Origin: Salpingoeca rosetta
Lineage: Eukaryota; Protista; Choanoflagellata
Assembly: GCA_033442325.1 (NCBI GenBank)
Contig: JAWQFM010000016.1
Span: 192,097 to 256,096 of the forward strand
Direction: 5' to 3'
Length of the DNA: 64,000 nt
The notes under the pieces are model-generated. The model ran no database searches. It saw only the letters and a list, made by a program, of their open reading frames with translations, and was not told the DNA's origin. This document shows, one piece after another, positions 18,866 through 38,671 of this stretch. The translations under genes and the position numbers were made by a program. Position 1 is the first letter of the stretch, and each line of letters opens with the position of its first letter.

Positions 18866-19358
18866 NNNNNNNNNNNNNNNNNNNNNNNNNNNNNNNNNNN
18901 NNNNNNNNNNNNNNNNNNNNNNNNNNNNNNNNNNNNNNNNNNNNNNNNNNNNNNNNNNNNNNNNNNNNNNNNNNNNNNNNNNNNNNNNNNNNNNNNNNNN
19001 NNNNNNNNNNNNNNNNNNNNNNNNNNNNNNNNNNNNNNNNNNNNNNNNNNNNNNNNNNNNNNNNNNNNNNNNNNNNNNNNNNNNNNNNNNNNNNNNNNNN
19101 NNNNNNNNNNNNNNNNNNNNNNNNNNNNNNNNNNNNNNNNNNNNNNNNNNNNNNNNNNNNNNNNNNNNNNNNNNNNNNNNNNNNNNNNNNNNNNNNNNNN
19201 NNNNNNNNNNNNNNNNNNNNNNNNNNNNNNNNNNNNNNNNNNNNNNNNNNNNNNNNNNNNNNNNNNNNNNNNNNNNNNNNNNNNNNNNNNNNNNNNNNNN
19301 NNNNNNNNNNNNNNNNNNNNNNNNNNNNNNNNNNNNNNNNNNNNNNNNNNNNNNNNNN
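18866..19358. other. Assembly gap (N run)
   Basis: Run of n characters. Confidence 1.
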
Positions 19359-19457
<99 letters not shown>

Positions 19458-21238: not shown

Positions 21239-24200
21239 ATGCGGCATGTGTGTTAATATCTGCGTGCATCTCCGTACGCGTTTGTGTGTGTCAGCATCAT
21301 GCATATTCCTCGCCTGCCTCTCCGTCCTTTACTTTTCTCACCACGCCCTGATCGCCATTGTGCCCACAGATGAAGCGAGCTGCGACAGGGCTGCTGCACA
21401 AGATCACACACACGGAGAAGATTGACGTGCGGTTACGCGAACACACGCTTGCCCCTTTGCCCGTGCCTGCTTTGAAGTTCAAGCGCACACAATCCGTGTG
21501 CACACACTCGCGCACTTTTCACACACACACACACACACACACCACTTGCTCACTCCCTCACACACACACATACACAACACAACACAACACAACACAACAC
21601 AACACAACACAACACAACACAGGACTCGCACGAGCTGCTGTCTGTGCGCAAGAATGTGGCGGATGCCATGGAGAGCACGTGGGTGGCGCTGCTGCGCCTG
21701 CGCGAGCTACTTGAACAGGGCAGCCGCTGCCAATACGCGCTTGTGGAACTTGTGTCGCACCTCCACCACTTTATCGACATGGCTTCAGAGGCAGCCGTGC
21801 TTGCAGAGGAGAGAGGCTTGTCTGATGTCGTGGACCGCAAGTGCCAGCAGCACATTGCTGCCCTCTGTCACACCAGTCGGCAACTTGCAGAGTTTTGTGA
21901 CAAGGCGCACCCGCCACTCGGTGCGTATCTGTCTCTGTGTGTGTGTGTGTGTGTCTGTGTGTGTGTGTCTGTGTCTGTCTGTCTGTCTGTCTGTCTGTGT
22001 GTGTCTGTCCTTCTGTGTGTTTATCTGTCTGCCTGTCTGTTTGTATGCATGCCTGTGTATTTTTGCATGAGCTGCCTTCCCCGCTCACCCCTAACACACC
22101 CCGAAACAAACCCCCCCCCCTTCGCCGTTCACAACGCGTACACATACATTTGTAGTCCTTGACGACCGGCTGCTGCCGCTGCAAAAGGAGAAGCTAGCCG
22201 AGTTCCACCACTACGCCAACGTGCTGCTGGAGCGCTCGGCGCAGGCGCTGGCGGACATTGACGCCGTTCTGCCACACCGCTCGCGGTCGGGGTCATCCGG
22301 CGCGCACGTGCGCACATCCCACTCGGCCGACGTGCACCACTTGCAGCACGAGCAGCACGGCCGGCTCTCGCACATCCACCTGCCCACGGCTCACCTGCAC
22401 CTGCACCGTCGCAGCAGCGCAGCCCAGCAGCACCAGGGCAACGCCGCTTCGCTGTCCACATCGGCCCCCGTGACGCCAGAACCACCAGGACAGCCGGCAT
22501 TGGCCTCTGCCACCTCAACAACGGCAGTTACAGCAACCACGGCCACAGCAACAAACGCCAGCTCCAATGCCACCAGCCCGCCAACCACGCCGACCGCCAA
22601 TCTCAACTCGGAGCAAGTCAAGCGGTTCACGCTGATTGGATATGACGCAACGCGCGTTGCCCGCGCCCTGAGCAACCACCGCCACGACATGCTCTCCGTG
22701 TACCGCGAGCTGACGGAGGCTGAGCGCGACGGCACAACGCACCGCTCGCTGTCGACGGGGCCGGGCGATCGTCGCAGCATCGGCCGCAAGGTCGCACACA
22801 GCCTGGCGTCGCTGGGCAGCGTGCACAGCCTGAGCGAGGCGCACCTGTCGAGTGCAGCACTGGCCGCGGCACAGCACTCGCATCACGCGCACGAGGGCCG
22901 CAAGCGCACCAACACGCTCACGATTCGGCGGCGGCGGAGCTTTGGCAATGAGGGCGACGAGCAGGTGCAGCCGTTTCAGCACCACCAGCACCACCACAAC
23001 CACCACCGCGCATCGGTCACTGGCCGGGCAACCAGCCCCCGCAGCCGCAACTCGGCCTCCACATCAGCGGCAGCGCCGCCCCTCACGCCAACACGCACCG
23101 CGCCAACCGCAACCGAGCAAGGCGCGGGCACGCGTGCGACCAGTGCACCGCACGGCACGCGGCCACGATCCCGCCACGTCTCCGCAACGGAGGACAGGCG
23201 ACGCGCGCACCGCGTGAGCGAAGACATTGCAGCACGCGCGCTGGAGGGGGAGCCAGACGGCCGCAACAGATCGGTAAGCGAGCCACACCTGGGTGACGCG
23301 GGCAGTGGTGCCGCCACGAACCAACAACACCGACAACAGCGGCAGGAACGTGAGCGACGAGGCAGTCACACGGGTGGTGATGATGATGAGGAAGACGATG
23401 ATGACAGCGACCGGGAGGAGCTGGTGCAGGTGTTGAGGGCACTGGATGGTACGCGGTTTGATGACGCAGAGGGCAGTGGCTCCAACAACGATCAACAAGG
23501 GCAGGGTACTGGACGCGGGCGCCGGTTCCGCGGTGCGCGGCTTGTTGACGGCGCGTTTGTCATGCCGCCACTAGCTGAGACTGCCGGTGACAGCGGCGAT
23601 GAAGGCAGCACCCATGGCGGCGAGGGTGATGGTGCGTCGCAGCACGATGAGGAAGGTGCCGGAACGTTCCTGCGACGAAAGAGGATGAGCCTTCGCGTGG
23701 CAAACGCGTTTGGAACAGGGCCTGGCCAGGACGCGCGTGGAAGTGCAGCACCACACGGCCTGCTCACCGCGTCCATGAAACGCAAGCGGCGCGGGTCCAT
23801 CTCTGCTGGTGGCCGGCGACTGCAGGGGTCCGGGTCGCCGCGAAATTCAAACGCGCGCAGCCCTCGCCGCGGACACAGCCGCACAGCGTCGCGGGACGAG
23901 GAAGCACGCGCTGTGACATCGACAACAGCATCAACGGCAGCCGGTGACGACAGCCAACATCAAGGTGCAACGCCAGCCAGTAGTGTGAGTGCACAGGATA
24001 CGAGCAACAAGTCGGGACAGGGAATGACTGCAGCTACTAGCGGTGAAGCCGAACGCAGTGATGGCAGCCAGCAAGCATCTGTTGGTGTTGGCGGTGATGA
24101 TGGTAGAACCCCCGACGCCAACCAGCCTCAGCAGCAACAAGCAGACGAAGAGCAAGATGGAGCAAGTAAAGGTTCGGCACGCGGTGATGAACACGCTGGT

Positions 24201-27200
24201 GGCAACGAGGCAGACGATGGCGATGGTGAGGAGGAGGAGGAGGAGGAAGAAGATGCAGAAGCGGATGACGAGCAAGCGAGACGAGAATGGTCGCACCTGT
24301 TTGAGTTTCCAGAGCAGCGCATCGCAGCAGCACATCTTGACCCCATCCACCTGTTCAGCGAACCGCCCACGCGCAGCGCAAACAACCCGTTCCTCGTCAC
24401 CCCAGAGGAGCACGAGCGCATCCAGGCCAGCGCACTCGCCCTGTTTCAGGATGACGACGATGACGACGACGACGCCAACACCACCATGAACAGCACCTCC
24501 ACGCTCAGCCTGAGCATGCTGGGGTCCCTCTCTCCGTCCACATCCAAGAGCGCAGAGCTGCACCGCAGCAGAAGCGCAGCGAACGCAAGCGCGCTGGCCC
24601 GCAACAGCGGTAGCAGCAGCAGCAGCAATGGCGGTGGTGGCGATAGTGGGGACAGCACGGGTGCACCAACAGCGGAGGAGCTGCACGCGTTTGCACAGAA
24701 CCTCTCACCGAGCAACCCGTTCAAGTCGCACCTGCAGACCCGCCCGCGGTCTGCCTCCTCTGGTGCGCATCCACTGCGCAAGGCCGCATCCACCAACTCG
24801 ATTTCAGCCTCTTCCTCGCCCTCCACCACGGCCCGCGCCAGCAACCCGTTCCTCGCCACTATCCAGCAGCAGCAGCGGCAGGCAGATGGTGGCGGCAGTG
24901 GGCGCAGGAGCACGTGCAGCAGTCCTGGCCAACAGGGCACGGAGCGCCTGACCAAGAGCGTGACCCCTACAGCAGGTGTGCTGGCCGTGTCGTCATCAAC
25001 ACCAACGCAGGGATCGGCAGTCACGTCGGGTTCTGCGTCCCCACCACAGGCCAGCATGCCGCCTCGGCCGCCAAAGCCAGTGCACCTGCTGGCCCAGGAC
25101 CCAACGAGCACACCACCGGGCCAGAGCGGCAGTGCAACAGCAACGACGACAGCAATGTCATCGTCATCGTCATCAGCAGTACCGCCATCGTCGTCCCCGC
25201 TGTCATCATCGCCGCCCCCGCCGCTGCCGGCGCGAAAGGCGCGTGCACCACCGTCGCCAATGGCCAGTGGTGGTGTGATTGACACCTTCCAGGCCAACAG
25301 CAGCGGCACAGACCTGAAGCCGAGCCCCTTGGCCGTGCAAGCCATGCACCCACGCACCTCCGCCACCAGCCAGCCATCTCCAGCGACAACAACGTCAACA
25401 CCAACAATAACAACGACGGCGCCAACAGCAACAGCAGCAGCAGCCTCGTCGGTGTCAGACCGTCCAGCACGGCCCACGCTGAGCCTGGGTGGCGTTGACA
25501 GCGGCGACTCGTCCACGGACCACATCCGGCAGTCGTGGTATCTGCCCGGCGCCACAGCTGACACGCACGCGGGCAGCAGCGGTGGCGGCAACGTTCCCCG
25601 CACGAGCACGATGAAGTCGAGTGCTGCAACCACACGCGCAGCGGCTGCACTGGCGGCGTCGTCATCCCCATCGTTGGTGGGCGGAGCAGGTGCAGCTTCG
25701 CCGCCGAAGCAGCGCCCACGCAGCCCCTTTGCAGGCAAGAACAACCCGTTTGTACAGCTGATGGAGGCCGAGGGCGGAAGGGGCCGCGGCGGTAGCGATG
25801 GTGACGATACCCGGGCACCGACGCAGGAAGGAGGTGTTGGTGGTGGCGCAGCAACGGGGGAGGACGATGCAACAGCAGAGGCGATGAAGGCGTTTATCGA
25901 GGAGGGAGATGAGATTGATGCTGAGACGGGTCTGGTGATTCGGAAACTTGAGGCCAACCCAGGCGACTCAAACACATCCACAGCAGCAGCAGCAGGGACG
26001 GGTGCAGGCGACACGTCGATTGTCTCGTCCACGGCAGGGGACACGTCCATCGCACGCGCACGTACACCAAGCGCTGGTGACACCGACGGTGATGGTGATG
26101 GTGATGGGGATGGTGATGGTGAACGCAACGCGGGGCGTGATGCAAACGCAGGCGGCGGCGGCGGCGGCGGCGGTGGGCTGATGCTGAGGGTTCGTTCGAC
26201 CTCCACTGCAAGCAGCAGGGGCGGAGCCGCGCCAGATGCACATGTTTTGGCCACAAAGTCGGATGTTGCACCGACACCCTCGTCACCGTCGCCAACCACC
26301 GCCCAACGGCAGGCAGCGGCAGCAGTGCTGTCGACGTCAGCCCCGTCCATGATCCCATCGCGTGGATCGTCGTTGTCGCTCGGGTCGACTGGTGGCAGTA
26401 CACGCACCTCGCAGGCGTCACCACGTCCCCATGGCCGCGGCACGCCGGGTGCTCCCACGGCAGCGGCGGCCGGTACCGACGCAAACACAACAACGGCAGC
26501 GCCAGCCACGACGTACTACTGCCGTGTGCGTGCAGGCACGCTGACGCAGGTGCTGGAGTATCTCATCTCCGACCGCATGCGGGACCCGAACCTGCTGGGC
26601 ACGCTGCGTACGTGCTTCCCCGTGTTCACGACGGCCAAGGACCTGAGCAGCAGACTCATCACGCACCACCGCGGGCTCATGACTGCGCGGACGGGGGGCG
26701 GCGGCGGCGCTGCTGAGGACGCCCTGGTGTGGAAGCACTGCCGCCTGGCCACGGCCATGAGCGAGTGCCTGGAGTCACTGGTGCCCGACCTGAGCGCGCG
26801 GCAGCTGCGGGAGCTGCAGGCGGTGGTGTACGATCTGCTGCAGCTTGAGCACGTCGACGTCGCCGCAGCGTACCTGGAGGACCTGTGGGTGGCCATTGGG
26901 GAGCGGCTGGATGCGCAGCAGGCAGAGGAGGAGCAGGAGCTGGCGGCGTCGAGCCAGCCGCGCGCAAAGGTGGCGGTGCCAGCAGCACCGGCCGGGCAGC
27001 GACCAACGGCGCTGCTGGCGTATTCGACGACAGAGCTGGCCAGGGAGCTGTGCGTGATGGCCAACAAGCTGTTTGGGCGCATCTCTGCGCGGGAACTGCT
27101 GGCGTGGCGGAAGAAGCAGTCTGCGGAGAACAGCCCGAACGTGATGAAGATGATTGAGCACTTCAACCACGTGTCCATGTGGGCGGCCACGTGCGTGGTG

Positions 27201-27643
27201 TGCACGCCGAAGCTCAAGCACAGGGTGAAGGTGATGGCGAAGCTGATCCAGCTGATGAAGCAGCTAAAGAAGCACCAGAACTTTGACACGCTGCTTGCCA
27301 TCCTGTCTGGCATGAACAACGCGGCGGTGTATCGTCTCAAGCACACGTTTGCCAGCCTGAACGCCAAGACGCAGGGCACGCTTGCGCGCCTGCAGGAGCT
27401 GATGAGCCACGAGAAGAGCTTCCTCAAGTTCCGCTACTACTGCCGCCAGCTCAAGCCCCCCGTTATCCCATACCTGGGCATGTATCTCTCCGACATTGTG
27501 TTTGTGCACGTTGGCAACCCAGACTACGTGGAGCTTGGTGCCGCCGTGCACCGCGGCAACACCTCAGAAAAGATTATCAACTTTGCCAAGGTGTGTTTTG
27601 AGGGGGGTGGAGAAGGGAGAAGTGGGTGAGTATAAGGAAGAGA

Positions 27644-27698
<55 letters not shown>

Positions 27699-27816
27699 TG
27701 TTGAACGCGTCTCCATGGACAGTATTCGTGTGTTCTTGTTTTGTTTGTTGTTACACTTACCATTGCGCACCCGTCTCCCTCTGTGTCTCCCTCACTTCTG
27801 CCCAAACAACCCAACC

Positions 27817-27871
<55 letters not shown>

Positions 27872-27895
27872 CACGAACACAACACGAACACACAC

Positions 27896-27992
<97 letters not shown>

Positions 27993-28209
27993 CCATCACA
28001 CGAACACACATGCACACAACAAACAGATGCACCAGCTGTACAACATCTGCGCGGCGGTTGAGGAGTACCAGAGTCACCCTTTCAAGTTTCAGTCCAAGGA
28101 GGAGATTCGGCAGTGCTTTGACGGCTTCAACCACAAGACCCACGATGAGCTGTATCAGCTCAGCCTGGAGATTGAGCCGCGCGGCGCAACGCTGGAGCAG
28201 ATTGCGTGA
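19932..28209 (+). CDS. RasGEF (CDC25-type) with N-terminal PH domain, long disordered middle, REM and CDC25 domains
   Basis: PH: HQGVLEKKVNNKHWRKRFVRLQ...YKAESEEGMNVWINEI. REM: VRAGTLTQVLEYL. CDC25: ELARELC...SPNVMKMIEHFNHVSMW...NFDTLLAILSGMNNAAVYRLKHTF...PPVIPYLGMYLSDIVFVHVGNPD...INFAK, and last exon LYQLSLEIEPR. Confidence 0.9.
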
Positions 28210-28848: not shown

Positions 28849-30129
28849 ATGCAACAACAACTACAACGTGGAAGGATAGCTTTGCCGCTGGCGGCAAGTG
28901 TTGTTGCTGCAGCTGCGTTTGTGCTGTGCACGTGCGTGTGCTTGCTCCCTGCGGCAACGCAAGCGCAACAGACGTCGCTTGTGCTCGTGCCCGGCAGCTG
29001 CGATTGCACCAACGACGCGGACTGTGGCTGCGAGAACAACGCCGAGTGTGTTGATCGCGCCAACAACACGCACACATGCATGTGCCGTCAAGGATTCGAA
29101 TGTAAGCTGCCACTGTCCGCTGCACGCACTTTGCCTCTGCACTCTGTGTTTGCGTGCACGGCAACTGCCGTGCGTATGCCCAACACGCACCTGTGCGCCC
29201 ATGGCAGCAGCGTCCTTTTCTTTCTTCGCACACACATATGTACGCGCACACACGTACTTGGACACTTGCTCATGCGCACACACGCATTCACTCACGCCCA
29301 CCTGGCGTTGCCTTTTTTGTGCACATATTTGTGGTTGTGTGCAGCTCGGAGATGTGAGACGGCATATGATCCCTGCGACGGAACCCCGTGTGGGACTGGC
29401 AACTGCACATACTCCTCGACCGTACTTCGTGACACGGCCGACTTTGAATGCTCCTGCACAAAGGAATTTGTGGGCGACACCTGCGACGTCCCGTGCCCCG
29501 CCAACTGCACCTCCTGTATTGAGCTGAATGATAAGGGCATCTGCACGCAGTGCGATTCAGGCTTTGCCATTGATAATACCAACAACGAATGCGTCACAGA
29601 ATGCCCATTGTACGTGTGTATGTGCCTGTGTTTTTGGTCTGTGCGTGCGCGCGCGTGTATCTGTGTCTGTCTGTGTCTATTTGTGCAACAGTACTGCTTG
29701 CAGTGTGCATCATCTCGAGGTTCCTCGACATGCTTCCTCGCTCACCCTGCGCCACGTTTCCGTATCGTGTCCTTGGCAGTGGAACAGAGAATCAGGACGG
29801 GTTCTGCAACGGTGCGTTCAACATCATCCATCTACTGTTACACCACGTCCCTCACCCACCCGCCACCTCTTCCTCCCCAACTCCTCTTCTCTTCCACCGA
29901 ACCACTGCGATCTCCTTCATTGCTGTACTCCACACCTCTCCTCTCGCTCACCTGTTTGCTGCCGCCTTGATTGTCTCGCCTCCAGACATCAACATCTGCC
30001 TCAACATCACGTGTGCCAATGGCGGCACGTGCGATCGAAACGCTGCCAGCGACGCAACAGCGTGCATATGCCCGTATGTTCATTCACCTTCCATGTGTAC
30101 CCCTGTGTGTGTGTGTGTGTGTGTGTTGA

Positions 30130-30209
<80 letters not shown>

Positions 30210-31274
30210 TCCTAGACTCCTGCCTCCTACGCTTGTCTCGCCCGCAGGCTTTGGCTTGTTTCTCGTTGTCACAACACCTCTCTCACAGCCACGTCCGGTT
30301 CACCACACACACACACGCGCGCGCACACACACGTTCTATCCCCCCCCCCCTCTCTGCACCTGCCTTCGTCTTCTCTCTCCATCACGACGACAGCACCGGC
30401 TACGACCAGCCGCGCTGCCTGACGGGCCAGGCGTGCAACGGCGTGGACTGCGGCAACGGCGAATGCTACATTGACGATGGTGTTGCGAAGTGTGACTGTG
30501 ATGCCGGCTTTGAGGGCACAAACTGCACAATCAACATCGACGACTGTGACCCAGACCCGTGCAACGGCGAGACGTGCATTGACGGTGTGTTTCGCACGCT
30601 TTCTGTGCGTGTGTGTCTGCGTGTGTGTCTGTGTGTATTACGGAGTGGGTAGCTGCTCGTGAACTTGATGATTGTTTCCCGCACCACCCCAATGCTCTTG
30701 TGATCGTCATCTCACGTTAAGCACCTGCTCTCACAACACCCTCGATTTTCGTGGCAAATACAGGCATCAACAACTACACTTGCTCATGCCCTTCCCACCT
30801 TGGCGGACCGTAAGTGTACTCACACACAAGCAAAACAAAGTTCACACTCTCCCACCTCTCCACACATCACTGCCATCGTAGCATGGGTTTTTGCCCCCCA
30901 CTTAACACCACACGTACACACATACTCACTCGCATACTCACTCACACACATACACACACACATACTCACTCCACACACTACTCACCACGCCACACTGTTC
31001 TACCTCACCACCGTTACCGCCATCAGGAACTGTGAGGTGCAGATCAACTGCGCGGCCGGCGCGTGTGAGCCCAACGGCGTATGCAAGAGCATTGCGACGG
31101 GCTTCGAGTGCGAATGGTGCGTACACTGCATGTGTGACTGCTTGCTACTCGTGTTGTTGATTCGTGTTGCTATTCCTGTTGTCCTTTGTGTTTTTTGATG
31201 TTGGGTGGTGTTGATGGCACTTGTCTCCTTGTTCAGGCAGTGTTCGCATTTGTTTGCCTACCGCGCACGCGCTC

Positions 31275-31334
<60 letters not shown>

Positions 31335-33016
31335 CTGCAGCGACCCTGGCTGGGAAGGTGACAGCTGCACGGATGACATTGACGAGTGCGCACCCGATGT
31401 CTTCCCCTGCTTGAATAACGGCGTCTGTACAACGCCAACCATCAACTCCTTCCACTGCGAGTGAGTGCTTGTTTCCGTGCTAGCTTTGGTCGGTTGGTTG
31501 GTGAGTTAATAAGTTTGCTTGTTTGTTGGCTGGTTTGTTGGTTTGTTTTGTTGGTTTGTTTTGTTGGTTTGTTTTGTTGGTTTGTTTTGCTGATTTGTGC
31601 CTCAGATAAGTAGCGCACCACACAACTCACATACCAACACCTCACAATCGCCCAACTGCCACTCCTCTTGCCTTCCCCCCCCCCCTACACAAACACACAC
31701 ACACATACACAAACACACACAAATCACAATCAAAATCACAACAGGTGCCCCACTGGGTTTACGGGTGATCGATGCGAAGAGAGTCCTTGCATCCCTTCGC
31801 CGTGCACGAACAACGGCACGTGCTCCGTCGACGACATCACAGGAAACTTCCTCTGCAACTGCACAGGAACAGGGTTTGCTGGCTCCATCTGCCAATGTGC
31901 GTACATGGCTGGATTGTTTGTGCATGCGTGCACTTGTGCCTTTGCGAGTTGCTTTTGCGGATCACGTCCATGCACGCATTCACACGCATTCACACACATT
32001 CACGCACATGCACACACGTGCACACGCATTCACACGCATTCACACACATACTTTGCGCACAAACACGTACTCACGCTAACCAACAACAACCACTACTCAC
32101 CCCCTGCCCCCCTCGCTTTCTCTTTGTCATTGTTACTCAGATGTTGACAAGTGCGTGGAAGACCCCACGCTGTGCGGCGAAAACGTGTGCGAGTCAACCG
32201 GGTCCTCGTACGTGTGCGTGTGTCCGGACGGCTCAAAGCAGAAGAACTGCCCTCCACCAACAACAACACCGCCAACCACAACTACAACGTCAACGACGTC
32301 TGCCGCCTCAACCAACGCACCAGCGAAGGACAAGAGCCTGCTCACCCCGCCTGTGCAGTATGGTGAGCACATGTGTGTGTGTGTCTGCGTCTGTCTGTGT
32401 GTGTGTGTGTCCGTGTCTGGTGGGTTTCATGGTGTGTGGGGTGTTTTCCTCTTGATCGTCAGCTTGTCTTCAATGCTGCACGAACAGGCGGAGCGTCCCA
32501 ACGTTGTGCATGCGTACATACTTGGATGGTTGCCACCTCTGCACGTACTTGCTTCTCCTCACCTGTGTACTGCATCCGCTCTCGCATCTTTGCGTGTGTT
32601 CATGTGACATCATCAGGGCTGATGGGCGCTGCTGCGCTTCTTGCTGTCGTGTTCACGATTGGTCTGGGGTGCTACTGCCGCAACAACCGACCAACAAAGG
32701 CTGCACGTAGGAAGGTGAGGCGTGTTGCTCCGTGTGAATGGATCTGACTGCAAACAAAACACACTGGCTCAACGTTCATCCCCGTTCTCCAACCCCTCGC
32801 TCACCCGCACGCACGCGCACACACACACAACATCAACACCATCACCATCATCGACATCAACACCATCACCATCATCGACATCAACACCACTACCACGACC
32901 ATCAACACCACCGTCGTCGTCACTGCGCCAGACGCGTCCGCCGTCAATGATGCGCTCCTTCTCAAATCCCGCCTTCAACCCAGACATCGACTCGGAGGAC
33001 TACCTCACGGTCTGTC

Positions 33017-33051
<35 letters not shown>

Positions 33052-34535
33052 TGTGCGTGTGTGTATCTGTCTGTCTGTCTGTCTGTCTGTCTGTCCGTGT
33101 CTGTGTGTGTCTGTGTCTGTGTCTGTGTCTGTGTCTGTGTCTGTTTACCTCTGTGTCTCTCCGTGTCTCTGCCTGTCCGCCTTTGCCTGTCAATGTGACT
33201 ATCTCTGGTTATGTCTAAACCGTTGTTCCCTGTTTCGTTCTTCATCCATCTCATTTTATCCCCCCCCCCCAATTCTTTCTACACCACCACCACCACCACC
33301 ATCAGATGCCTGGTGCAGACGGGTCGACGAGTGACGGGTACATGGGTCTGGACGCGTTCCAGAACACATCGCCAACAAAGCGGCCGTCGGTGCCGCGGAC
33401 GGCGTGGCAGAAGAAGAGCACCCATCTCGACGGCATTCAGGAGGAGGGATCCTATGATGACCTCGGCAGTGATGAGGAGGAGAAGCTTGAAGGGTACTTG
33501 GAGGTTGGCACGGCTGACGCCTCAGCATCGAAGGGAGCGAGCACAGGAGCAACAACAGCAGCAGCAGCGACAACAACACCAGCAGGTGGCAAGGTGGCCA
33601 CGGCGGCTGGAGGGAAGAAGGCAGCAGCACCCAACGCTGCAAAGGGCGGGAAGAAGCCGGGCAAGAAGCCCAGTGGAAAGAAACCCAAGCAACAGCAGAA
33701 GCCGGCCATGAAGCAGCAGCAGCAGCAGCAGCAGCATGATTCGTACATGGATCTTGAGGACGATCAGGGACAGCAGAGCTACATGGACGTGGCGACGGCC
33801 GGGACAAGACCAGTCGCGAAACCAACCACGTACTCGAGCGTTGGGGCACAGCCACCGCAAGACAACTACCTTGATGTGGACAACGACCAGCAGCCACAGG
33901 ACAGCTACATGAGCGTGCAACAGCAACAACAACAGCAACAAGACAACTACCTTGATGTGGACAACGACCAGCAGCCACAAGACAGCTACATGAGCGTGCA
34001 ACAGCAACAGCAGCAGCAACAAGACAACTACCTTGATGTGGACAACGACCAGCAGCAACAAGACAACTACCTTGATGTCGACAACGACCAGCAGCCACAG
34101 GACAGCTACATGAGCGTGCAACAGCAACAACAACAGCAGCAACAAGACAACTACCTTAATGTGGACAACGACCAGCAGCCACAGGACGACTACTTCCAAG
34201 TGGACAAGAGTACTGGGCGGTACATGAGCGTTGATCGGAGCCAGCAGCAGCAGCAGCAGCAAGACAGCTACTTGAACGTCACACGCAATGATGCAGCAAA
34301 CGAAGGGTACATGGGCTTTGATGAGGGTGACGATGATTCATCGTCTGACGAGGAGGACTTTTCCATCATCCCCAAGCAGCAGCAACAACAACAACAACAG
34401 CAACAGGAAGGGGCTGATGGCTCATACATGCATGTGAGCTCGCCACAGCAAGAAGGTGGCAACGACAGCTACTTTGATGTTGAGGGCGCGGCAAAAAACC
34501 CGTCCTACTTGCATGTGGCTGGCAACAAGTCGTGA
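28849..34535 (+). CDS. Type I membrane protein: signal peptide, ~9 EGF-like repeats, one furin-like Cys repeat, Thr-rich stalk, TM helix, tyrosine-motif-rich cytoplasmic tail with no catalytic domain
   Basis: Exons reassembled through GT-AG sites give EGF patterns (e.g. [44 protein letters not shown]). TM exon 32617-32714 reads [21 protein letters not shown] followed by basic [12 protein letters not shown]. The tail is mostly exon 33306-34535. Confidence 0.85.
33861..34200 (+). repeat. Coding tandem repeat (units of 81, 81, 39 and 84 bp plus a partial unit) encoding [21 protein letters not shown]
   Basis: GACAACTACCTT(G/A)ATGT units start at 33861, 33942, 34023, 34062 and 34146. Confidence 0.95.
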
Positions 34536-35033: not shown

Positions 35034-37687
35034 TCAAAACGCTTGTGTGTCGAACAACACGGATGATCTCTCTTCATGTTCGTTCAGCAGCGACTGGCTC
35101 TCGCCGTTACCAACGCTGCCATTACTGCTGCTGTGCACCACATCATGCCTCACATCATGCCTCACACCATCGCCCCCGCCTGTCTGGTCATCGTTCTCTT
35201 CCCTCCCACCACGGTTTGGCTTGCTACTCTTCGCCCCTTCTCCACTCTGCTGCTTGCTATTTCCCCCTTCTTCTCCGCCCTCCTGCTGTTTCTCCTGCTG
35301 CTGCTGTTTCCTCTGCCTGTGTGCTGTGCGTCGTCGTCGTACTCTGCGCACCCTGCGCGTGGATGGCTGCACGAAGCTCTCACCGCCAGCACCAATCGTC
35401 GACTTGTCGCTCGTTGCTGCTGCTGCTGCTGCTGCTGATGTCATTGGTACCGCTGATGTCAATGCTTGTGGTGCACCTGTGGTGTGGCTGTTGCTTGGTG
35501 TGACATGGCTCGCGTCGGCGTGACGCCTGTTCCCGCCACCATCATCGCCATGATGACCATCACCGTCATCGGCATCATCCAGGGAAGTGTCCATTCCACT
35601 GGTTGCCATCGTTGACGCTGCAGCCGGCGCCGCTGTGGTAAGTGCTGTGGTTGTTGCTGCTTCAAATCTCGCTGATGATGACGCTTCTGTGTTCCTTTGC
35701 GCTGTCATTGACTCGACGCTTTCCGACGCTGCCGCTGTTTCACTTGTACGCGTGGCTGCGACCACTGCCGTCGTTGGTGTTGGCTCCATCGCTGCTGTGT
35801 CCTCTGCTGCGCTGCGGTGTGTGCGGCGCCGGCCTGTTGTGCTTGCGTTCGCCTTCCGCGTCTTGGAGAGCATCGACGCGAAGCGACGGAAGCGCGCAGA
35901 CGATCGAAACTGCGCAGGAATCACGGGCGCGGTCGTGCTCAGCCACGCATTGTCGCTCATGTCATCAATACCACCATCAGCATCATGTTCAACGGGATCG
36001 GCGTCGCTGTCACTGCCACCACCACCACCACCACCACCACCACCACCACCACCACCACCAACACCAACACGCGTGCGTCCATCCACATCAACGGCCGCAT
36101 ACCGCCTCTGCTGCTGCTCCTCTTCTTGCTCTTCGTCTGGGTCGGGAAAGTAGCGGAGGGTGGTGTTGGTCGGCAGCACGTGCTTGAGGGGCACGAGACA
36201 TGATTGCAGTACGCGCCCCGTTCGTTCGCACACGCATCCGTCGGCACAGTTCTTCACCATCAACATCAGCCCGCCTTCTGGTCGGCTCCCAAAGTACACG
36301 GACTTGCAGCTGCGACATGCAATCGAGTTGAAGTGCAACGTCGCGACGCGCTGTCGCTGTTGCTGTTGCTGTTCATCGTGGTGTTGCCCATTGGCGGTGT
36401 TGTGGCTGCTGCTCTCGGTTTGTGCTGACTTTCTCCTGCTCCTCTTTCGCTTTCTGCCACCCTCATCAGCACCATCGACACCATCGCCTGCACCGTGATC
36501 ACTGTCCGTGTTGTGGTCGCTGTCGTTGTCGACACCTCGCTGTGATTGCGACTCGAATGCGTCTGGCAGCAGGAACGGGCACCCCGCCTGCGTGAACGTG
36601 TGCGTGAGCAATTTCGCTCGCTTCGCAGCATTCGACGCTGCTGACAATGACGATGATGATGATGATGATGATGACTCCCCAGCACTCCGAACCATTGACA
36701 GCCGACGCACCGCAGCTACAGCAGCTGCATTCGATGGCGACGATAACGACGACGATGATGATGATGACGATGATGGTTTGCTGTGTGCGGTGGCGCTTGG
36801 TGGTCGTCGTCGAGACCACACGCCTGCGGCCTGTCGCCTCTGCCTCATCCACGCAGGCTGCCTTTCCTTTGCACCAGCACCCTCCGAGCCCTGCTCTTGC
36901 TGTTGTTGCTGTTGCTGTCGTTGTTTTTGTTGTTTTTGGTGTTGCTGTTCGGGCGTGAGTGGCACGAGGCTGTTCAGTTGCTCGTGAATCGTGTGCGCCG
37001 GCATCTGTGCCTGAGATTGTACGCCCCTGCCACCATCACCATCGCCATTAGGACCACCAGTAGCACCACCATTAGCATCGCCATCACCATCGCCATCAGC
37101 ACCGCCATCATCAATAGGATCGTCATCATGCCCTGCGCGCTTGCTGGGTGTCTTCTTGACTGCAAATGAGGACGTGATGCGCTCTCGCACAGCCGTTGCC
37201 CCTTTGGTTTTGGTGGCCTTCGTGCCACGTGCATGCTTGCCATCCCCAGCATCTTCGTCATCACGGGCGCCCCGTCCACCGCCTTCGCCATGGCTGTGAG
37301 TGTCGTCATCGTCAATGATAACGACATCCGATGCCTGCGTGCTGGCGCGCATGTCCTTTGCTGTCAAATTGCTGCCGGCCTCTTCATCGGCACTCGATGC
37401 GCCCATGTCTGTCAACTGCCCGTCACTGCCATCATCACCACCAGCATCATGACCATCATCATAACCGTCATACATGGATGTGGCGTGAACACGACCCTGG
37501 CCCTTCCTTCGTGTCTTCTTCCTCGTCTTCTCTGTCTCCTTTGTACTTTCCTTTGCGTCCTCCTCCTTCTCCTTCTTCTTCTTCTTCTTCTTCTTCTTCT
37601 CCTTCTTCTTCTTCTCCTTCTTCTCAACTTTCTTTACCTTCTTCCGAGTCGCCTTTTTCTTGCTCTTTCCCTCGCTCCGCACACTCG

Positions 37688-37757
<70 letters not shown>

Positions 37758-38671
37758 GTCGTCGTCGTCGTCTGTGCCCATGCTGCCATCAAACACAACA
37801 CCGGTCGCCTTGGTGTGGTAACGGAACTTGCTCGACACATCACCTGTGTTCCTCCCGCCACCAGCGTCACCATCACCATCACCACCCTGACCCACCCCCT
37901 TACCACCACCACTGTTCTTGGTGCGGCGGCGTTGCAGTGCAGCAGCTGTGCGCGCTGCGAGCGACTTCACCACACCCGTGCGCGACATAAACGCCTCCAC
38001 GCTTGTTGGCACCTGCACCTGATACAGGCTCGGTGGGTTGTTGTCTGGAAGCAGGTCGCGAAAGTGGGGGAGGGGGTCGACGCTGGCTGCACGGACAATG
38101 GGTACAATCGTTTTTGGACCAATTGTCCGCACAAACAGCTGCAGCTCGTCAAAGTTGCTGTGCAGGGAGTAGGGCACGCGATGGAGACGGGTGGTGGCCT
38201 TGACGCTGTGGTGCTGCGACGGGTCAACGGTGCTGAAGGCAGACGGGTTGTATGCAGTTAACACAACACCAAGCGCAGGCTGGATGTCATATCCCTCGAC
38301 ATATGCCTTGGTGAGCTGGTGCCGCGGCACGACGTGGAAGCGGGAGTCTTCGGGCTGCGTGGTGAACGCGCTGCATGGGATGCCAGCCACCCTGTACGTT
38401 GCAAGTTGCGGTTCGCTGACGTGGATGGCGGCGCTGTACTTGGAGGCAACGTCCAGCAGCACGTCCTCCTTGCCAAGCGTGTCGACACCGAGAAGGATAT
38501 CGTAGTCGGGGTGGTCGTCAATCAGCCGAAACAGCTGCATCTTGGCCATTTCTTGCGACGGGTGGCGGCAGCGAGGGTTGCAGTACGTGTTGTCCAGGTA
38601 CAAGTGGTCCACAGACACGCCCTCCAGCACACTGGTCTGCTGTGGGGTATACCTGCGCACGGGGGGACGAA

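Follow-up and report, generated by a model that had tools for sequence, protein, structure and literature searches.

Kinase-less membrane proteins with repeated tyrosine motifs in their cytosolic tails are already known from choanoflagellates and animals. Salpingoeca rosetta PTSG_05573, PTSG_12435 and PTSG_12436, together with Monosiga brevicollis A9VAL3 and A9V449, are membrane proteins with cytosolic YxxP arrays, and YxxP phosphopeptides of the S. rosetta membrane proteins bind the SH2 domain of choanoflagellate Crk, for which these proteins have been proposed as docks (Shigeno-Nakazawa et al. 2016, PMC5043372). In M. brevicollis RTKB2, the RM2 tail repeats are phosphorylated and bind the Src SH2 domain (PMC3584944). 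Among animal proteins, the tails of CED-1, Draper, MEGF10 and PEAR1 carry tyrosines in NPxY-type motifs and in YxxL or immunoreceptor tyrosine-based activation motifs (ITAMs), which are phosphorylated in trans and read by SH2 or PTB domains (e.g. PMC6219719, PMC5303877). Here we analyzed a 64,000-nucleotide stretch of S. rosetta contig JAWQFM010000016.1 (positions 192,097 to 256,096, hereafter the window), and describe a predicted EGF-repeat surface protein without a kinase domain, whose last exon encodes a long array of YxxPhi motifs (Phi being a hydrophobic residue).

The last exon (33306-34535, plus strand) encodes 409 amino acids (translation of 33306-34532) including 21 tyrosines, every one of which is followed at +3 by valine (17/21), leucine (3/21) or phenylalanine (1/21), as the original prediction for this locus had stated. 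Position +1 is methionine, leucine or phenylalanine in 19/21 cases, position −2 is acidic in 15/21, and position −1 is S, N, G, T, D or R and is never hydrophobic (0/21). The individual motifs named earlier were all recovered (DNYLDV four times, DSYMSV three times, and DSYMDL, EGYLEV, DDYFQV and DSYFDV), as were the prevalence of an acidic residue at −2 and the Q-rich linkers that separate the motifs (79 glutamines in the exon). Nine tail sites begin with YM. A 22nd motif, EDYLT/M (here and below, the slash marks an exon boundary), is encoded by a 78-nt exon further upstream (32932-33009), so that in the 11-exon gene model described below all 22 tail tyrosines match Yxx[LIVMF], with the consensus [D/E]-[S/N/G]-Y-[M/L/F]-x-[V/L]. 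No Pfam domain was found in the last exon, and the tail is probably disordered.

This motif array is non-random. Valine, leucine and phenylalanine together make up 9.3% of the last exon, and across 200,000 composition-preserving shuffles at most 10/21 tyrosines had one of these residues at +3, while the local baseline in the other long open reading frames of the window is 33/185 tyrosines (18%). Part of the array is young: Tandem Repeats Finder delimited a tandem repeat at 33858-34207 with a 39-nt period in 8.7 copies, and an 81-nt super-unit that is 96% identical. Even so, 17 different 9-mer contexts are represented among the 21 motifs, and each of the 12 motifs lying outside this repeat conforms despite its divergence, which at the baseline rate corresponds to a probability of about 1e-9 (0.18^12). 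Spacing from tyrosine to tyrosine is mostly 12-17 residues from Y147 to Y335 (~190 residues), and the whole region is therefore an old 13-residue periodic array, the centre of which was recently re-amplified.

An all-library HMMER search with the tail returned six matches, five of which were unrelated periodic acidic repeats and one a true homologue, a Tara Oceans metagenome fragment of 159 residues on a 913-bp scaffold (P0001/L019). Its terminal exon encodes seven tyrosines, and the conservation on which the original prediction depended extends to all of them: 7/7 lie in the same motif (DNYFEV three times, SYLAV three times, and GYVGF), and, as in S. rosetta, they form a dimotif separated by Q-rich linkers. 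Repeat units are closer to each other within each species than to those of the other species, and it is thus the motif itself (tyrosine, hydrophobic +1 and valine at +3) that survives repeat turnover. Phenylalanine does occur at +1, +3 and within a conserved DFSII; at motif position 0, tyrosine and never phenylalanine occurs in 29/29 motifs of the two species, which points to a reader or enzyme dependent on the hydroxyl. The two sequences also share a GY(M/V)GFD...(I/V)PK element (window 34305-34379; L019:488-571) with 25/27 aligned residues identical, far better conserved than the rest of the tail. This element resembles a CK2-type acidic cluster followed by a dileucine-like or LIR-like (LC3-interacting region) DFSII. 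No further environmental homologue was found in JGI metagenomes, either with a back-translated alignment scan or with a DEEDFSI[IV]PK DNA pattern.

The predicted gene comprises 11 exons totaling 2799 nt and encoding 932 residues, with a single terminal stop codon and GT..cAG introns throughout (Table 1). The model was built from reading frames and splice signals and joined only for checks of frame and hydropathy, while database searches were made exon by exon and never with the joined 932-residue sequence. Upstream of the membrane span, the model predicts a mucin-like stalk preceded by about nine EGF-like modules, and Pfam searches of every exon gave EGF-type matches only, confirming the earlier statement that a catalytic domain is absent. 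The label "EGF receptor" given at the same time does not fit: EGF-like repeats are present, but the protein is not an ErbB-type receptor for EGF, and the ErbB family, characterized by receptor L domains, a furin-like Cys-rich ectodomain and a cytoplasmic tyrosine kinase domain, was rejected on the same kinase-free, EGF-only Pfam content. The interval previously assigned to the tail, 32617-34535, does start at the first base of the membrane-span exon, and it also takes in two introns and the 78-nt exon. This small exon would connect the span exon and the tail exon, so that their junction, which had been assumed, would run through it by phase-compatible GT..cAG introns; the frame is kept whether it is included or skipped, and the tail exon acceptor is cag/ATG in phase 0. 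The predicted splice junctions from exon 8 through the membrane span and 78-nt exon to the tail exon are clean and phase-compatible, and the weak points of the model lie elsewhere, at the exon 4 donor and at the 3' end of exon 2, which could be 29609 or 29617, with the phase of exon 3 fitting 29617 only. Introns of the gene are (GT)n-rich.

Table 1 Predicted exons and tail features, with positions in the window
Feature	Position	Strand	Evidence
Exon 1: start codon, signal peptide (hydrophobic residues 8-39), first EGF-like module	28849..29101	+	Open reading frame, hydropathy, weak hEGF/EGF Pfam matches, donor T/gtaagc
Exon 2: Cys-rich, EGF/furin-like repeats	29345..29617	+	Frame and phase; no Pfam match
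Exon 3: EGF-like module	29986..30073	+	Weak Pfam EGF match; phase chain
Exon 4: two EGF-like modules; weak donor gtttcg	30394..30588	+	Pfam, phase
Exon 5: EGF-like module	31027..31116	+	Pfam, phase
Exon 6: end of one EGF module, start of a Ca-binding-type module (DIDEC)	31341..31460	+	Weak Pfam EGF_CA/EGF matches; consensus donor gtgagt
Exon 7: EGF-like module, the sole exon over the Pfam EGF cut-off	31745..31896	+	PF00008, 23.4 bits, E 7e-5
Exon 8: last EGF-like module, Thr/Pro-rich mucin-like stalk	32141..32362	+	Pfam EGF/EGF_CA; donor G/gtgagc, phase 1
Membrane-span exon: predicted span, CYC, basic stop-transfer	32617..32714	+	Hydropathy; acceptor cag/GG, phase 1 (matches exon 8); donor AAG/gtgagg, phase 0
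Small juxtamembrane exon, 78 nt, symmetric phase 0/0: FSNPAF, EDYLT/M	32932..33009	+	Sole AG between 32720 and 32932 (210 nt)
Last exon: 409-aa disordered-looking tail, 21 Y-Phi-x-V/L/F motifs, stop codon	33306..34535	+	Translation, motif statistics; no Pfam family
Lys/Gly/Ala/Pro-rich polybasic patch (...KPAMK) between proximal and distal Tyr motifs	33591..33713	+	Translation
Young tandem array, 39-nt (13-aa) period x8.7, 81-nt super-unit	33858..34207	+	Tandem Repeats Finder
Best-conserved element: acidic/Ser cluster then DFSII, fits [DE]xxx[LI][LI] and LIR patterns	34305..34379	+	Alignment to Tara Oceans homologue

If this model is right, the product appears to be a type I single-pass surface protein with a 465-residue ectodomain and a Cys-poor cytoplasmic tail of 448 residues that lacks an enzyme domain. 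The model contains two hydrophobic segments only, the signal peptide and the membrane span, with 64 cysteines before the span and one after it, seven N-glycosylation sequons before it, and a basic stretch directly on its inner side, and these signals place the tail in the cytoplasm, in line with the original prediction that it would not be extracellular. Tyrosine sulfation was ruled out on this predicted topology, with the tail following the only span of a signal-peptide protein. The CYC at the membrane-cytosol boundary (32670-32678) is a possible palmitoylation pair, and FSNPAF (32959-32976), in the skippable 78-nt exon, is an NPxF of the PTB-ligand type.

Compared with the described systems, this protein shares with the choanoflagellate YxxP proteins a single predicted span, the lack of a kinase and repeated cytosolic tyrosine motifs proposed as SH2 docks, and PTSG_12436 likewise has EGF-like repeats. 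However, the YxxP proteins carry 5-10 YxxP (Crk-type) motifs and in some cases a terminal SH2 domain, whereas here there are 22 Y-Phi-x-V motifs, none of them with proline at +3 (0/22), and no SH2 domain. Sequence similarity to the YxxP proteins was not detected in a search of the S. rosetta genome with the tail, which matched only itself. RTKB2 is also a choanoflagellate EGF-repeat receptor with a disordered tail of repeated tyrosines, but its RM2 repeats lie in cis behind a kinase domain and read YEAI (Src-SH2 type), while the present tail accompanies no kinase and has a motif with a hydrophobic +1.

By architecture, the closest animal analogue is the CED-1/Draper/MEGF10/PEAR1 group (PMC6219719, PMC5303877), in which an EGF-repeat ectodomain and one span are likewise found without a kinase. 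The S. rosetta protein instead has NPAF in place of NPxY (FSNPAF in the 78-nt exon, an NPxF without tyrosine) and 22 motifs with mostly valine at +3 in place of one ITAM. An EMI domain was not matched by Pfam in exons 1-2, where a PEAR1-like EGF reached only E 0.34, and membership in the CED-1/Draper/MEGF10 group was rejected, since there is no EMI, no strict ITAM and no detectable homology; the likeness is one of analogy only. YxxPhi motifs are abundant in the tail. The comparison with immunoreceptor tails made in the original prediction fails for the strict ITAM, Yxx[L/I]-x(6-8)-Yxx[L/I], of which the tail contains none, with valine at +3 in 17/21 motifs and array gaps of 9-10 residues. The nearest ITAM-like case is YMDL-x8-YMDV, and the Tara Oceans YFEV-x8-YLAV has the right spacing with valine at +3. 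Cbp/PAG and LAT (PMC3492796, PMC2213442) resemble the protein in their enzyme-free tails with many SH2-docking tyrosines (candidate docks here) and in their boundary cysteines (a palmitoylated CxxC there, the putative CYC pair here), and one site in the tail, YSSV, equals the Csk-SH2 site of Cbp/PAG (PMC3492796). In these adaptors, however, the ectodomain is all but missing and the 5-10 motifs are heterogeneous, compared with a predicted ectodomain of several hundred residues and one uniform motif here. Finally, p130Cas (15 YxxP) and IRS-1 (YMxM) also repeat one tyrosine motif, there used for multivalent SH2 recruitment, and the nine tail sites that start with YM recall those of IRS-1, but p130Cas and IRS-1 are soluble, rely on targeting domains (SH3, PH/PTB) and have P or M at +3, where this tail has V.

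Our searches of the S. rosetta genome covered the 55.4-Mb, 68-contig assembly. Paralogous tails, which the original prediction had proposed to look for across the proteome, were not found: a six-frame search with the whole tail, and a second one restricted to the C-terminal 114 residues and run to E 10, returned no locus but the tail itself, and weak matches (L021-L023) were rejected as Q-rich or acidic noise. When the genome was searched for closely paired [D/E]xY-Phi-xV motifs, the coding loci recovered were this tail and one other, the remaining matches being mostly (GT)n microsatellites; outside this count of coding loci stand L016, of unclear coding status, and the uninspected L030 and L031. 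L016 (G000:C18:1055732-1055802, minus strand) is a short repeat, DVYLYVHVHLYFHVYFHFDLYFSV, that matched the motif-pair pattern. The second coding locus (G000:C20:651000-660999, minus strand; L018) encodes a tyrosine kinase (PF07714) with an HMD catalytic loop of the HMTK type and a weak PTB match. The matching exons sit 0.8-2 kb downstream of the kinase exons on the same strand and contain GGNYFDVD, GSYFQV, GAYLQI, ESYMQI, ADYFDVD, DAYFDV and DSYLAV, so that 7/7 tyrosines lie in [N/S/A/D]-Y-[F/L/M]-x-[V/I]. These exons show weak pairwise similarity to the last three motifs of the receptor (E 5e-4), and in the simplest reading they form the C-tail of the HMTK kinase. An open reading frame between the kinase and the matching exons reads TNNPEF (NPxF). 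A genome-wide search for the single motif NYFxV[D/E] showed no enrichment (3 matches versus 4 for the control), and the Y-Phi-x-V vocabulary seems nearly private to the receptor tail and the HMTK-adjacent locus.

Candidate readers are plentiful, with at least 92 SH2 matches in the genome. One locus (G000:C7:1972000-1981000, minus strand) holds a PLC-gamma homologue with PI-PLC-X, two SH2 and an SH3 in one 505-aa open reading frame, and PI-PLC-Y, in the order X-SH2-SH2-SH3-Y. Two others (G000:C23:863000-872000 and G000:C12:1071000-1079000) encode long single-frame receptors that end in tandem SH2 domains, one of 1572 aa with four TNFR-type Cys-rich repeats, the other of 1194 aa with Ig-like/HYR repeats. 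A 497-aa open reading frame with three SH2 domains was found on G000:C6 (L034), with two more SH2-bearing frames beside it. Together with the (GT)n-rich introns and the HMTK-type kinase, this SH2 complement and the tandem-SH2 receptors identify the genome as choanoflagellate.

The best reading of the tail, and one we hold to be somewhat probable, is that it would act as a phosphotyrosine docking platform. The EGF-like modules and stalk would lie outside the cell, where ligand-driven clustering would expose the tail to tyrosine kinases acting in trans. These kinases would be of the receptor or HMTK type, and not Src or Abl, because positions +1 and +3 are hydrophobic and −1 is not. The original prediction had taken the motifs for Src-family substrate sites, but animal Src and Abl favor a large hydrophobic residue at −1 and disfavor one at +1, the opposite of what the tail displays, while EGFR-type kinases prefer acidic residues upstream and a hydrophobic +1 (PMC6077704). 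HMTKs have been defined as a family with catalytic domains closest to FGFR, and HMTK1 is directed to its substrate by its own PTB domain (PMC3082566). Once phosphorylated, the array would offer a multivalent dock for SH2 proteins that read pY-Phi-x-Phi, such as PLC-gamma with its tandem SH2. In the Songyang classification, phosphorylated Y-Phi-x-Phi is the classical preference of SH2 domains of the PLC-gamma, SHP2 and p85 type. Extrapolation from animal SH2 domains is reasonable, since the SH2 domains of MbSrc1 (PMC3584944) and Crka1 (PMC5043372) have kept animal specificities. The juxtamembrane NPxF could bind PTB domains, perhaps Numb/GULP-like ones such as those of HMTKs, while the CYC pair and polybasic patch may promote membrane association and the acidic DFSII element may control trafficking. 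A narrower proposal, which we regard as doubtful, is that the protein would be a membrane docking subunit for kinases on other polypeptides, sharing its reader with an HMTK whose PTB domain is recruited by the NPxF. Such a subunit could, with similar reservations on our part, be a pre-animal transmembrane counterpart of FRS2/IRS, with for instance the tandem SH2 of PLC-gamma as the shared reader.

A number of points weigh against a docking platform. We infer phosphorylation, the kinase and the reader from the motif sequences, and a published study of kinase inhibitors in S. rosetta presents anti-phosphotyrosine blots without site lists (PMC11984502). Our assignment of kinase and SH2 classes extrapolates from what is known of animal enzymes. 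Conservation is seen in a single homologue, an environmental fragment, and what is best conserved between the two is an acidic cluster resembling a sorting signal rather than a tyrosine motif. The young array at 33858-34207 accounts for about 9 of the 21 motifs as recent copies, and the core motif also fits the AP-2 YxxPhi and Atg8-interacting patterns. At the HMTK locus, direct joining gives a phase mismatch both from the last kinase exon to tail exon A and from A to B, and we therefore describe the link as "adjacent, same strand" only. In addition, we infer the splicing of the exon chain from frames and splice signals. No deposited protein of any length holds the tail (all-library HMMER) and none of 257-817 aa holds exon 2 (word search), both with records from this genome possibly left out, and thus no public gene model supports the splicing.

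The motif composition is also compatible with other functions. The tail could be mainly a trafficking device, in which unphosphorylated YxxPhi motifs would bind clathrin-adaptor mu subunits and the acidic/DFSII element would serve as a dileucine-type signal, for rapid endocytosis or for lysosomal or phagosomal delivery of an EGF-repeat uptake receptor. The AP-2 mu2 pattern YxxPhi fits 22/22 tyrosines, the best-conserved stretch fits [DE]xxx[LI][LI] with CK2-type serines, mu2 binding, like a kinase, strictly requires tyrosine, and choanoflagellates are phagotrophs. We nevertheless find this unlikely as the main function, both for the sorting device as such and for the uptake receptor it would serve, since known sorting tails have one or two signals and not 22, valine, which occupies +3 in 17/21 motifs, is the least favored Phi residue of mu2, neither an acidic upstream residue nor a hydrophobic +1 is needed for mu2, and the same vocabulary adjoins a tyrosine kinase. 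A trafficking role at least in part is likely, because the most conserved element looks like a signal of the acidic-cluster/dileucine type, and a phospho-switch would reconcile docking with trafficking. Read instead as Atg8/LC3-interacting regions, the motifs would make the tail a multivalent adaptor for autophagy or LC3-associated phagocytosis. The [W/F/Y]xx[L/I/V] core and acidic/Ser context fit, FUNDC1 has DSYEVL as its LIR, and the conserved EEDFSII resembles classical LIRs and is the best single candidate. This reading strikes us as the most improbable of all, as W, F and Y are interchangeable in LIRs while 29/29 motifs use tyrosine, no LIR arrays of such size are known, and LIRs do not typically have M at +1 or N at −1.

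Two further explanations concern the exon itself. The last exon opens exactly with ATG after its putative acceptor, reading on past the donor at 32714 leads to a stop codon 10 codons later, and no public model supports the junction, so it could be a separate gene starting at ATG 33306 and encoding a soluble cytosolic scaffold of the Cas/IRS/Gab type, with the receptor ending soon after its span. Docking would survive in that case, but the term "receptor" would not. However, the donor AAG/gtgagg and acceptor caccatcag/ATG match in phase (0/0) and take the form seen at the other ten junctions, the intervening 32715-33305 shares the (GT)n/(CTGT)n richness of the gene's other introns and contains an in-frame exon that adds a further motif, and there is little room for a promoter, all of which makes a separate gene as unlikely in our view as a tail devoted mainly to trafficking. 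The array might also have expanded neutrally as low-complexity sequence, with a Q-rich, microsatellite-like repeat including a tyrosine codon by chance and serving no motif-specific function. Its central 350 nt are indeed a young tandem repeat of near-identical units in a genome full of simple repeats, but the 12 diverged motifs outside it conform, the motif is kept in a second species with different linkers, and spacing is regular over 190 residues, and we consider neutrality very unlikely.

Neighboring genes help to delimit the locus. Upstream on the same strand lies a RasGEF gene (22095-28206, plus strand) with an 1844-codon exon (PF00617, E 1.5e-54), and downstream a convergent DRMBL/SNM1-like gene (35034-38660, minus strand) with long acidic and Lys-rich low-complexity runs, and because of these flanking genes the tail exon is taken as terminal. 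The RasGEF neighbor, which had been flagged as possibly coincidental, is indeed a separate gene, with no evidence of a link. Further upstream, an assembly gap (N run) at ~18870-19400 is flanked by (GT)n repeats. A chance periodic match was to a Tubulanus polymorphus (nemertean) protein, unnamed in the database (P0004/P0007; XP_074656900.1, XP_074656898.1), in which by eye CUB-like repeats and one span precede a tail of ~35 repeats of PPEDTY(V/I)VAGV. It illustrates, for an animal, a receptor that lacks a kinase and ends in a very large tail of tyrosine repeats.

Tyrosine kinases, phosphatases and SH2 domains are more numerous in choanoflagellates than in most animals, and to our knowledge almost no physiological substrates or docking sites have been described for these choanoflagellate proteins. 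The pre-metazoan substrates of tyrosine kinases were likewise stated to be unknown in the study of choanoflagellate Crk (PMC5043372). Kinase-less choanoflagellate membrane proteins with tyrosine-motif arrays of the YxxP type have been published since 2016, including those of S. rosetta, and the general picture is unchanged by our analysis. What is new is the Y-Phi-x-V motif type (22/22), its regular array with a 13-residue period, the conservation seen in an uncultured relative and the vocabulary shared with an HMTK-adjacent tail. The tail presents 22 uniform, conserved motifs in one grammar that predicts both a kinase class and a reader class, which makes it a convenient natural test substrate, and with the vocabulary nearly confined to two loci, experiments on it would be specific. 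If the protein is indeed a docking subunit for kinases on other polypeptides, it would provide a first natural substrate-reader pair for choanoflagellate tyrosine signaling.

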